Shown here piece after piece: positions 2,922-6,300 of a stretch of 64,000 bases of DNA (position 1 is the stretch's first letter; each line of letters starts with the position of its first letter). The translations under genes and the position numbers were made by a program. The stretch spans positions 248,001 through 312,000 of the forward strand of contig NIVC01000132.1 in the NCBI GenBank assembly GCA_002269645.1, in the 5' to 3' direction. The notes under the pieces are model-generated. The model had not been told where the DNA came from, made no database searches, and saw only the letters and a program-made list of their open reading frames with translations. This DNA comes from Macrostomum lignano (lineage: Eukaryota).

Positions 2922-3341
2922 TCAGTCGGCAGCGGCGGCGGGCGCTGCCACAGTCGTCGGCACCCGGTAGAGCCGTCGCCTAGGCAACAGTTTAAGCCTC
3001 AGACAAGCCTCCCATAGCAACGGGCCCAACAGATTCCAGGCCAATTTGCCAACGTAGAAATAGAAGATAATCCACAATGCTACGCCGGCCAGTCGTCGCG
3101 TGGGAGCGAGCAGTCGCCAGGACGCGGCCACCAACGTGTCCAACTCGGCGGCCGGGTCGTATCCGGTGAATGGCCGGGCGGTGACCAGCGGCAGGCGGCA
3201 GGGGCTCAGCTGAAGCTTTGGCGGCTGGCCGTCCGCTGTTGGCCATTCGGGACAGGCCGCGTCCGGCCGGTAGGCCCGGGCTGCCGCGCACTGAGCGCCG
3301 GCCAGGCGGGACAGCCAGGCGTGCCACACCCGGATGATCTC
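2922..3341 (-). CDS. Gene A last coding exon: second loop, TM7, basic cytoplasmic tail, stop
   Basis: tctcgcag acceptor, phase 0; [27 protein letters not shown] then [14 protein letters not shown]; TGA at 2924-2922. Confidence 0.85.
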   Translation of the reverse strand, partial: EIIRVWHAWLSRLAGAQCAAARAYRPDAACPEWPTADGQPPKLQLSPCRLPLVTARPFTGYDPAAELDTLVAASWRLLAPTRRLAGVALWIIFYFYVGKLAWNLLGPLLWEACLRLKLLPRRRLYRVPTTVAAPAAAAD

Positions 3342-6300
3342 CTGCGAGATCGATGCAGAATGATTATCGATTGGCTTGGCCGGATCAAAGTTCAAGCTCA
3401 TTGGACCAAATTGCATAGTCACGTGACTGCTACATGTAGCTTCCAGCCAATAGAAATATGGGCCGGGTGGTTCCCAAGGTCACTAATATACAATACGCTT
3501 ACTATTTTGACGGGCTGCACAGTTTGTTTAACGCAACTGGATTCTAATTAAGCTAGCAGTAAAACTGGACTCGAATCTAATAATCACTCAAATTAATAAA
3601 CCAATCAGGATTGCTCCTCAGGAACTTGACTCTAGATAGTTTATCAATCAATCAAGTAAAGCCAAATCAATTTTGAATTCTTTAGAAACTGAACTTTATT
3701 CAATCAGTCAATCAAAGCAAAACCAATCAATCAATCAATCAAAAAAATCTGTCAATCAATCAAAACAATCTATTAGTTAATCCATCAATCAAAACAATCT
3801 ATTATTCAATCAGTCAATCAATCAAAACAAACTATTAATCAATTAATCAATCAATCAATCAATCAAAACAAACTATCAATCAATCAATCAATCAAAACAA
3901 TCTATAAATCAATCAATCAATCAATTTAAACAAACTATTAATCAATCAATTAATCAATCCATCAATCAAAACAAACTATAAATCAATCAATCAATCAATC
4001 AATCAATCAAAACAATCTATTAATCAATCAATCAATCAATCAATAAATCAAAACAAACTATTAATCAGTTAATCAATCAATCAATCAATCAATAAATCAA
4101 AACAAACTATTAATCAGTTAATCAATCAATCAAAACAAACTATCAATCAATCAATCAATCAAAAAAAACTATTAATCAATCAATTAATCAATCAATCAAT
4201 CAATCAAAACAATTTATTAATCAATCAATTAATCAATCAATCAATCAATCAAAACAATTTATTAATCAATCAATCAAAACAAACTATTAATCAATCAATT
4301 AATCAATCAATCAATCAAAACAATTTATTAATCAATCAATCAAAACAAACTATTAATCAATCAATCAAGAAAGCCTCCCCCGCACACCTGATAATGCTGC
4401 AGTCTGGCTTCCACCGCCCGCTCCTCGGCCCGGACCACCTGCTCGTTAAGCCTGGCTGCGTGCTGGGCCAGGCCCGAGTTAACCAGCCGCAGGCGCGCCC
4501 TAGCCGGCATCAGCAAGCCGTCGTAGAATCCGACAGCGTCTAGAAACCTTGGCGAGGCCAGCTCGTCCAGATTGGCGGACAGCAGCCAGAGAGCCAGCAG
4601 CACGGCGGCCCCGCCAACCAGCCTGGGCACAAAGGTGGATCGCAGAATCCGGCCAGCAGCGGCCGAGACCCGGTTGGACTTCCTATTGGGCCCGGCGCCC
4701 TCCTGCCGACAGTTGATGACCAGCGGCTGGCCGGTCAGCATCACGCCAGCGGTGTGCAGGCTGGCGAATATGTTGTGCAGCAACCACAGCGCGTCAAGGG
4801 CGATGCTGCCGGCCAGCAGGTGCCACACCGTCAGCTCCGGCCAGCCGCTGCTGTCGTCTCCACCGCCGCCAGCGGCTCCGGCAGAATCGGCCGCCGCTCC
4901 GCCTCGCAGCTCCATCGGCGAGTCCATCAGCACCGTCCATTCGTTTTTAGTTGGCTTAAACTCGTGCCGCATCTGGTCGGCATTGTAGGGCCGGTAGGGC
5001 TGGCCGCGGCTGCCGGCGCCCAGGCTGCCCACCACGGAGGCGTTGATCCGGTCCAGCGTCAGCCGCGGCAGTTTCTGGGCAAAGATTCGGCCGGCCTGAG
5101 GACCCGAGGAGCCGCCGCCGGCGCTGCCAGGCGGCTGCAGGCCGGACCAGAGCGGGAACGGGCGCGTGCTGACACCTTTAGCCGATCGCTGCCTGCGGAC
5201 TTCGTCGTAGAGCTTCTTGACAGGTTGCACCCACCAGCTGTTGGTCACGCGGTCGTGCTCAATACGCGAGTCGATACGCTGAGCATACTCTGAGTAAAGC
5301 TCATTGAATCGATTGCGAAATTCTGCTAAATCCGAGTTCAGCTCATCCGCCACTGTCTGCATCCGGTGCAGCACCGCCGACTGCAGCTCGGAGAATTGCT
5401 CGCCGCGGCCCAGATACCTGAGGATGAAGGATGCAAGGATCGGGTTACATTTTCGCCGCATAATAATATCCGTACAAGCTACTGATCCGCTTATCATTGT
5501 CAGTAGCACTAAATGCGCTAAAATTGCTCAAGAAACTAAACTGAAAAATGGCCTCAATAATTACAAAAAATAGTCTAGTCTACTATTCAGCCTACTGACA
5601 AGAGTAGAAAGTAAGGAGTTTAGTCGGAAATCTATCTCTTAGCCAAAAATAAATGAAACCCGAAAAAAATTGAGAGCCACTCTCACCTGGCCGACATGCT
5701 AGTTAAATTTGCTTCCACATCAAGCCAAGTGTCGTTAAGCTGTTTAACGCACAGCTGCCTTTGCAGTATCAAATGATCGTATTGCCTAGCCAGCTCAGCG
5801 CTCATATGTCCGGCTAGTTCAGTCTGGCGCAGAGCCTGTCCGGCCCGGGCTGTCCGAAGAAAATCGGCCAGTTGAACACGAAGCGAAGCCACAGGCGGAC
5901 CGGCCAGCACGCAGAGGGACAGGGTGAGGGCGGTGAAGGAGAACAGGATGAGGTAGGCCGGCCGGATTAAGGCGTAGAGCAGGAACAGTAGGCGGTGCGA
6001 CCGCTTAGGCGAATGATCGGGCGGCGGCGCCGGGGCGGGCCAGAGCTGGGCGAGGCCGAGCAGCAGCAGGCAGACAGCGGCCGCAGCAACCAGCAAGCCC
6101 AGGTAGAGAGGCGGCAGAGCGGCGGAGGCCGGCTGGCCAGCCAGTTTTTGTTTTTGCTGCTGCTGTTCGAGCTTGTTGCCATGGAGACGCTCGGATCGGG
6201 GAAACAGAATCGAGGAAGCCGAGGCGCTTCCTGCGGATGCGGCAGCAGCTGAGGCGGTAGACAAGCGCTCTGTAACTATGCGAACAGTGCCCCAGGCGTC

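Follow-up and report, generated by a model that had tools for sequence, protein, structure and literature searches.

Background

Prominin (PROM1/CD133; Pfam PF05478) possesses five transmembrane (TM) segments, a short extracellular N-terminus, and a cytoplasmic C-terminal tail, with two short loops on the cytoplasmic side and, outside the cell, two large glycosylated loops made of long helices with conserved Cys residues; its most conserved residue is a Trp (human W795) located where the last TM meets the outer face (PMC11405016). The Tweety proteins (TTYH1-3; PF04906; structures 7P5J, 7P54, and 7RTT) display the same five-TM topology, along with buried polar or acidic residues in the TMs, a disulfide-stabilized second loop, and a G-aromatic-Y motif where the TM behind their Cys-bearing cytoplasmic loop reaches the outside. 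Their TM helices extend into an extracellular helical domain, as in the case of TM2/E1, where the TM helix continues as a long extracellular helix (PMC8361169). A further assemblage, that of the cell-fusion proteins DC-STAMP, DCST1-2, Sneaky, and SPE-42 (PF07782), comprises multi-pass proteins with sizeable extracytoplasmic loops, and is defined by the DC-STAMP domain together with an intracellular C-terminus bearing six invariant Cys residues, a non-canonical RING (PMC8989947). Here, we analyze a five-TM module encoded on the minus strand of a 64,000-nucleotide stretch of the genome of the free-living flatworm Macrostomum lignano (GenBank assembly GCA_002269645.1, Mlig_3_7, contig NIVC01000132.1, positions 248,001 to 312,000 of the forward strand), which we call the window and in whose numbering all positions are given. 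An initial reading of the window from its letters, made with no database searches (the sequence-only reading), had placed this module in the structural class of prominin, Tweety, and DC-STAMP. We find that the module shares the prominin-like layout, that by its architecture and motifs it falls in an unnamed spiralian family of large EGF/TNFR-bearing proteins, and that it probably serves these proteins as a receptor anchor.

Results and discussion

A five-span module at the C-terminus of a large predicted surface protein

Joining three minus-strand exons, whose phases are compatible and whose introns are all GT-AG, yields a 713-residue open frame that ends at a TGA stop codon (2924-2922) and in which a Kyte-Doolittle scan detects five hydrophobic spans. 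This three-exon product constitutes the C-terminal end of a 1905-residue protein, for in our splice model the whole gene (2922..22892, minus strand) comprises 13 exons with an uninterrupted reading frame of 1905 codons and GT-AG introns throughout. The exons and features of the module, with residues numbered along the whole protein, are as follows.

6379-5687 (-): exon 11, encoding the end of the ectodomain, TM3, a basic loop, TM4, and the start of large loop 1
5417-4388 (-): exon 12, encoding the remainder of large loop 1, TM5, a basic loop, TM6, and the first half of large loop 2
3341-2922 (-): exon 13, encoding the Cys-containing half of large loop 2, TM7, the basic tail, and the stop codon at 2924-2922
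6040..6117 (-): TM3, residues 1280-1305; hydropathy peak 2.64; follows the Cys-rich ectodomain and is predicted to run from outside to inside
5992..6039 (-): predicted short cytoplasmic loop with PKRSHR, residues 1306-1321 (16 residues); K+R 3, D+E 1, no N-glycosylation sequon
5899..5991 (-): TM4, residues 1322-1352; contains a polar position occupied by R, K, Q, or H in eight aligned homologues
4835..5898 (-): predicted large extracellular loop 1, residues 1353-1617 (265 residues), with the intron 5686-5418 inside; predicted helical
4736..4834 (-): TM5, residues 1618-1650; invariant D1631, near-invariant W1634 and H1637; family motif D..W..HR, with N for the R here
4622..4735 (-): predicted TM5-TM6 cytoplasmic loop with RKSNR, residues 1651-1688 (38 residues); K+R 7, D+E 1
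4568..4621 (-): TM6, residues 1689-1706, followed by the motif G[FY]Y
3093..4567 (-): predicted large extracellular loop 2, residues 1707-1849 (143 residues), with the intron 4387-3342 inside
3000..3092 (-): TM7, residues 1850-1880; mid-membrane N/D/E position and conserved W1876
2925..2999 (-): predicted cytoplasmic basic tail with RRRLYR, residues 1881-1905 (25 residues); K+R 6, D+E 1, no Cys

Loop 1 holds a single conserved Cys (C1402), conserved E1387, R1390, W1485, and W1513, and three N-glycosylation sequons, while loop 2 is predicted to form a long helix followed by a non-helical stretch that carries its three Cys residues (C1784, C1796, and C1814). The TM5-TM6 loop carries the family motifs L.G.P and F.P[KR], and in several homologues also clusters of adjacent cysteines (CC). 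Immediately upstream of the module lies an 830-residue ectodomain with 35 Cys residues, an EGF-like module, and TNFR-like repeats, which ends directly at TM3. All that the sequence-only reading had listed is recovered in the spliced frame: TM3 to TM7 and the basic stretches PKRSHR, RKSNR, and RRRLYR are all present, and TM1, TM2, and EGF/TNFR-like exons were found upstream, in keeping with its statement that the module is fused behind an EGF/TNFR ectodomain. The two large loops are likewise there, with loop 1 predicted helical and three Cys in loop 2, but at 265 and 143 residues they are shorter than the ~280 and ~150 residues it had estimated.

The 3' end of the gene model is independently supported by the public annotation of NIVC01000132.1, which holds a minus-strand gene with the identical 3' end base. 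The annotated product has 1649 residues and no Pfam match; given our 1905-residue model, at least one of the two must be wrong in the 5' half. Homologues are collinear with the exons from 13997 down to 4364 (tblastn), and the gene is intact.

An unnamed spiralian family with a conserved pentaspan module

Searching 1.84 billion cluster representatives with the 713-residue module protein (phmmer) recovered 15 matches at E<=0.001 (range 8e-29 to 1.9e-4), nine of them at E<=1e-10. The family so far comprises about 20 large proteins that are conserved along the module, and every named match is annotated as 'hypothetical' or 'uncharacterized' and is spiralian; this one search yielded no family member from a non-spiralian organism among the named matches. 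Its members are distributed as follows.

Trematodes: Clonorchis, Opisthorchis, Schistosoma japonicum, and Dicrocoelium; monogenean: Protopolystoma
Annelids: Owenia and Helobdella; molluscs: Argonauta, Octopus, Sinanodonta, and Batillaria; brachiopod: Lingula; nemertean: Tubulanus
Representative accessions: Clonorchis sinensis KAG5441784; Schistosoma japonicum KAH8854923; Tubulanus XP_074657526; Lingula XP_023930919; Octopus bimaculoides LOC106875217

Similarity runs through the whole module rather than through isolated segments. The alignment to one homologue extends unbroken over query residues 88-699 and takes in all five spans; the product of exon 12 is the best-conserved part (query 419-602 against Clonorchis, domain E 3.4e-26), and that of exon 13 is matched at query 616-700 by residues 2463-2547 of the Clonorchis protein (domain E 4.6e-6). 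In an alignment of ten modules, the five spans and the invariant residues line up across the member phyla. D1631 in TM5 is invariant, and a further set of positions is invariant or nearly so: W1634 and H1637, the L.G.P motif that follows TM5, the Pro in the F.P[KR] that precedes TM6, the Gly in the G[FY]Y that follows it, A1743, N1747, C1402, C1784, C1796, C1814, R1848, W1876, and R1881. Nine of the ten sequences carry N, D, or E at one mid-membrane position of TM7.

The full-length members span 1700-2800 residues, and in every case the module is preceded by an EGF/TNFR-type Cys-rich ectodomain, the only upstream Pfam matches being to EGF_CA or EGF_3 and to TNFR_c6. The M. lignano protein reproduces the architecture of the family (a signal peptide, TM1, a low-complexity or disordered region, TM2, the EGF/TNFR and Cys-rich ectodomain, and the five-TM module) as well as its motifs, namely D..W..H, L.G.P, F.P[KR], G[FY]Y, R.N, the one-plus-three loop cysteines, and the W that closes the last TM. 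While collinear architecture, motifs, and cysteines are the same, the identity of the M. lignano module to those of the other members is only 17-31%, and, unlike them, the M. lignano protein is without the middle TNFR repeat, and its EGF module is degenerate. On the strength of this collinear architecture and motif set, we assign the module to an unnamed spiralian EGF/TNFR-pentaspan family.

Other search routes recovered little. A word-index protein search returned no match for either the single sequence or the raw alignment, though member sequences were in that alignment; after low-complexity masking of the alignment it returned one match, an Octopus protein. No literature was found under six homologue locus or accession names.

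Predicted membrane topology and structure

In the topology that we infer, the N-terminus of the module lies outside, both large loops are extracellular, and the tail is cytoplasmic: TM3 would pass inward and TM4 outward, the 265-residue loop would lie outside, TM5 and TM6 would repeat this inward and outward passage, the 143-residue loop would again lie outside, and TM7 would return to the cytoplasm. The EGF/TNFR ectodomain, being disulfide-rich and hence extracytoplasmic, adjoins TM3, which would place the loops as proposed if all five spans cross the membrane. Several independent patterns bear on this. The short loops and the tail are basic, with net charges of +2, +6, and +5, and the large loops are balanced. 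N-X-S/T sequons number 1-10 in loop 1 and 0-2 in loop 2 of the ten sequences, and the 581 residues that their TM5-TM6 loops comprise together contain none. In all complete sequences a single Cys falls in loop 1 and another three or four in loop 2, and juxtamembrane CC clusters are confined, across the ten sequences, to the TM5-TM6 loop. Juxtamembrane clusters of this kind are typical of cytoplasmic acylation sites. The charge, sequon, and cysteine patterns all agree with large loops located outside, as the sequence-only reading had proposed, and none of them points to the cytoplasmic placement that it had named as the contrary outcome.

A single-sequence AlphaFold prediction was unusable (predicted local distance difference test score, pLDDT, 43), and the model based on the ten-sequence alignment reached a pLDDT of 65.9 and a predicted template-modelling score (pTM) of 0.44. 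Its confident parts are the TM helices, a continuation of TM4 by about 70 residues (pLDDT 79-92), by which TM4 would run on as a long extracellular helix, and the helix leading into TM7. Another helix of about 70 residues begins some 15 residues past TM6, after two short helices (pLDDT 80-91). On the predicted cytoplasmic side, the model forms a two-strand sheet from a strand in the tail (model residues 635-640) and one after TM5 (model residues 401-406). The remainder of loop 1 and the overall packing in this model should be regarded as unreliable.

A probable receptor anchor

Taken together, we consider it fairly probable that the region is the C-terminal pentaspan membrane module of a 1905-residue, seven-pass surface glycoprotein, in which it would act as a receptor anchor. 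In the mechanism we envisage, TM4 and TM6 would be extended as long helices and, with the return helices, would form an extracellular helical stalk, probably stapled by the four conserved Cys residues (one from loop 1 and three from loop 2), among which one inter-loop disulfide is possible. This stalk would bear and position the upstream EGF/TNFR region, the putative ligand-binding part. Conservation is strongest in the membrane core, with the invariant Asp in TM5, the basic or polar position in TM4, and the acidic or amide position in TM7, and at the predicted cytoplasmic face, with H-R, L.G.P, F.P-K, W.Y.K-R, and the strand of the tail, paired with the one after TM5. As conservation peaks in these two places, we argue for coupling to a conserved intracellular partner over simple tethering; hence, rather than being a passive tether, the module may couple the ectodomain to a conserved cytoplasmic platform.

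Certain points weigh against this proposal. The topology was derived from rules (the upstream disulfide-rich domain, the positive-inside tendency, and the sequons) and not from a dedicated predictor or experiment. With a pTM of 0.44 from ten sequences, the AlphaFold model is of medium quality and draws loop 1 as an implausibly long single helix, so that the packing of the stalk and the pairing of its disulfides are guesses. The M. lignano copy departs from the consensus at two predicted cytoplasmic motifs, with HR replaced by HN and LYGYP by LTGQP. That the family is confined to Spiralia was concluded from a single phmmer search, run with one divergent sequence as query, and a profile search might widen the range. 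Finally, the anchoring function is itself what we infer from these features.

Relationship to known membrane protein families

The foremost alternative is that the module is a true but highly diverged member of the prominin/Tweety superfamily, a pentaspan that would interact with lipid or cholesterol, shape membranes, and here be joined to an adhesion-type ectodomain. As in prominin, there are five TMs with the N-terminus predicted outside and the C-terminus inside, two small cytoplasmic loops, and two large, long-helical extracellular loops with predicted glycosylation and conserved, disulfide-capable cysteines; TM order, orientation, and the two large loops are identical in layout, and loop 1 is close in size to that of prominin (265 against ~280 residues). 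As in the Tweety proteins, buried polar and acidic residues occur in the TMs, TM helices appear to extend extracellularly in the manner of TTYH TM2/E1, loop 2 may be disulfide-stabilized, and a TM preceded by a cytoplasmic loop with Cys clusters ends on the outside in a G-aromatic-Y motif. Nevertheless, there are departures from both families. Loop 2 has half the length of its prominin counterpart, loop 1 has about twice that of TTYH loop 1, and the module is preceded by two more TMs and the 830-residue EGF/TNFR ectodomain where prominin has only a short N-terminus. The outer-end Trp that marks the last TM of prominins has no counterpart in the module family, in which the conserved W1876 sits instead at the cytoplasmic end of TM7, and the Cys-rich first cytoplasmic loop of prominin is likewise absent, the TM3-TM4 loop holding at most one Cys.

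Profile comparison, which the sequence-only reading had itself put forward as a check against the Pfam Prominin, Tweety, and DC_STAMP models, lends no support to kinship. We ran hmmscan against Pfam with a threshold of E<=10 on the separate exons, the spliced module, the ten alignment members, and the family consensus, and obtained no match to Prominin (PF05478), Tweety (PF04906), or DC_STAMP (PF07782) even at that threshold. Reference sequences provided the controls: human TTYH1 (identical to 7p5j_A over residues 3-451), TTYH2 and TTYH3 from alignments of PDB entries, and a human PROM1 sequence, which scores 1028 bits over the whole PF05478 model. TTYH1 scores 598 bits on the Tweety model, and PROM1 by itself reaches 24 bits (E 1.6e-5) on the same model, which establishes that plain HMMER detects the link between prominin and Tweety, whereas ten members and a consensus of the present family match neither. 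A search of PDB sequences, a set with no PROM1 entry, with the family profile and with an ectodomain gave no match, and no TTYH chain in particular.

Comparison by hhalign in local, low-mact, and global modes, using the ten-sequence family profile whole and as each of its halves, gave probabilities of 0.1-0.4% against both TTYH1-3 (E 0.14-0.67) and PROM1 (E 0.15-0.75). In contrast, a control of equally thin profiles, with a four-sequence TTYH profile set against the single PROM1 sequence, gave 92-94% (E ~1e-7 to 6e-7). The best of the noise-level family matches sets the G[FY]Y that follows TM6 on the GFYGN that follows TTYH TM2 (E 0.14-0.33). We considered the corresponding equation of TM5-TM6-loop 2 with TTYH TM1-TM2-loop 1 and rejected it: half-module profiles attain only E 0.14 and a probability of 0.4%, and since the motif follows the fourth TM of the module but the second TM of TTYH, the two pentaspans are not in collinear register in this alignment, which is treated as chance.

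Foldseek searches of the AlphaFold model against 350,542 PDB chains found nothing at E<=0.001 (best E 2.4), although this is a weak test owing to the pTM of 0.44 and the poor resolution of long all-helical folds by the method, and we read its outcome as a lack of support and not as a refutation. The 28 chains listed include coiled coils, designed bundles, I-BAR domains, and TM domains of ABC transporters (E > 5), and TTYH1 (7p5j_A) does figure among them, at rank 20 with E 8.9, a probability of 0.02, and TM-scores of 0.12/0.17. Weighing these lines together, the five-TM layout described by the sequence-only reading stands, while the kinship it implied beyond topology finds no support from Pfam or hhalign; prominin and the module have no sequence or profile similarity. 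Judged by sequence and profile, the likeness to prominin and TTYH is at present one of layout and not of demonstrable descent, and the module, though it shares their predicted topology, cannot be filed in the prominin, Tweety, or DC-STAMP families. We regard descent from the prominin/Tweety stock as unlikely, and we attach the same low credence to its more specific form, in which the module would be the first recognized representative of a third, very deep prominin/Tweety branch, with a lipid-interacting anchor fused to an EGF/TNFR ectodomain and two further TMs.

The residues buried in the membrane suggest another alternative to a receptor anchor, namely an ion- or solute-conducting or sensing domain in which buried charges form a binding or permeation site gated by the ectodomain. 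The invariant Asp in the middle of TM5, the R/K/Q/H position conserved in TM4, and the N, D, or E found mid-membrane in TM7 of nine of ten sequences could be construed in this way. However, five helices per chain with one polar cluster are equally typical of structural helix packing, and TTYH proteins, which have similar buried acidic residues, have been shown not to conduct ions (PMC8361169). Neither Pfam nor the sequences of the PDB offered similarity to any channel or transporter family, and the ABC-transporter matches of Foldseek lie at E > 5. We deem this quite improbable.

A relationship to the DC-STAMP/DCST/Sneaky/SPE-42 cell-fusion proteins has in its favor the multi-pass organization with large extracytoplasmic loops, a likeness of the loops to which the sequence-only reading had pointed. 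Set against it are the lack of a PF07782 match at E<=10, a different TM count for the whole protein, and the absence of the six-Cys RING terminus: the tail of 25 residues contains no Cys, and those of the homologues contain at most one. The sequence-only reading had already remarked that no C-terminal RING is visible, which the cysteine-free tail confirms. This relationship, very improbable on these grounds, can be considered effectively refuted.

An artefactual frame or a decaying pseudogene, as the minisatellites crowding the surrounding sequence and the two altered motifs might suggest, is scarcely credible for a gene with 1905 codons free of stops over 13 exons, GT-AG introns throughout, almost all family-invariant residues kept, exons collinear with homologues in other phyla, and an independent annotation ending at the identical stop codon.

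The remainder of the gene and its surroundings

Upstream of the module, the protein begins with a signal-like N-terminus (22892-22824), followed by a 97-residue N-terminal segment, predicted to be extracellular, with three sequons. Between TM1 and TM2 lies a 280-residue region rich in Ser, Pro, Gly, and Ala that is presumably cytoplasmic. The homologues' EGF/TNFR regions match exon 7 in tblastn comparisons. In placing exon 8, an acceptor at 10273 was rejected, as it breaks the frame; 10229 keeps the frame and agrees with the homologues. The upstream features and exons are listed below.

21989..22066 (-): TM1, residues 121-146
15260..15319 (-): TM2, residues 427-446, similar to Clonorchis KHLRFTTLTMLTFLWL
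13679..14021 (-): exon 7, EGF-like module and first TNFR-like Cys repeat; weak Pfam matches to hEGF and EGF, and tblastn
22892-22722, 22341-22210, 22123-21928, 17752-17679, 16595-16192 (-): exons 1-5 of the splice model
15620-15080, 14021-13679, 10229-9556, 8336-7771, 7198-6725 (-): exons 6-10 of the splice model

The exons are GC-rich and almost devoid of repeats. Minisatellite or microsatellite arrays occupy eight of the 12 introns, with several in each of the two longest and none in four short ones, and a further array lies directly beyond the stop codon.

2508-2796: 3' flank, 18-mer array
3700-4368: (TCAA)n
6436-6679: 24-mer array
8428-9543: 27/52-mer array, ~42 copies
10300-10826: 31-mer array
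11269-12388: 41-mer array
13275-13536: 33-mer array
14070-15066: 18-mer array, ~58 copies
15625-16191: (AGAC)n, ~144 copies
17023-17358: 42-mer array
18633-19311 and 19934-20358: CT-rich arrays
21377-21862: 27-mer array

Intron 3 (4.2 kb) also contains two similar stretches of about 70 bp on the minus strand (18490-18570 and 19810-19890), of the form caaaggacccgagggccgg...ggctttg...ggcc. Each borders a GA/CT-rich array and resembles the ends of a repeated or mobile element.

Elsewhere in the window, 281-859 (+) holds an intronless prefoldin gene (192 residues, PF02996), by which the window was matched to M. lignano contig NIVC01000132.1. A canonical calcium-binding EGF module at 56167-56840 (+) shares 49-52% identity with Lingula members of the spiralian family and is followed across a short repeat-filled intron by a TNFR-like repeat; the two may belong to a paralogue's ectodomain. 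The 64-kb window contains no second pentaspan module. An open frame at 60368-60600 (+) combines a signal-peptide-like start with a TNFR-like repeat, precedes a long minisatellite (~60600-61870), and may be exon 1 of a further TNFR-repeat gene.

Conclusions

The gene analyzed here was already predicted in GenBank, and its sequence is not itself new. What is new is the recognition that its last ~630 residues constitute a self-contained and conserved pentaspan domain, one with neither a Pfam family nor a solved relative nor any literature. This domain, which occurs in five spiralian phyla (Platyhelminthes, Annelida, Mollusca, Brachiopoda, and Nemertea), would deserve a domain entry of its own. 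If a fold link to prominin and TTYH were true, a small superfamily would be extended, with its anchor used within a receptor; and if the module were a third branch of that superfamily, spiralians, including the parasitic flukes, would have a 'receptor-prominin' linking ligand binding to membrane curvature or lipid handling. The family points to a lineage-restricted class of large predicted surface receptors that is present in the medically important flukes Schistosoma, Clonorchis, and Opisthorchis, and as M. lignano is a tractable organism for which RNA interference and transgenesis are available, the function of these proteins is directly testable.

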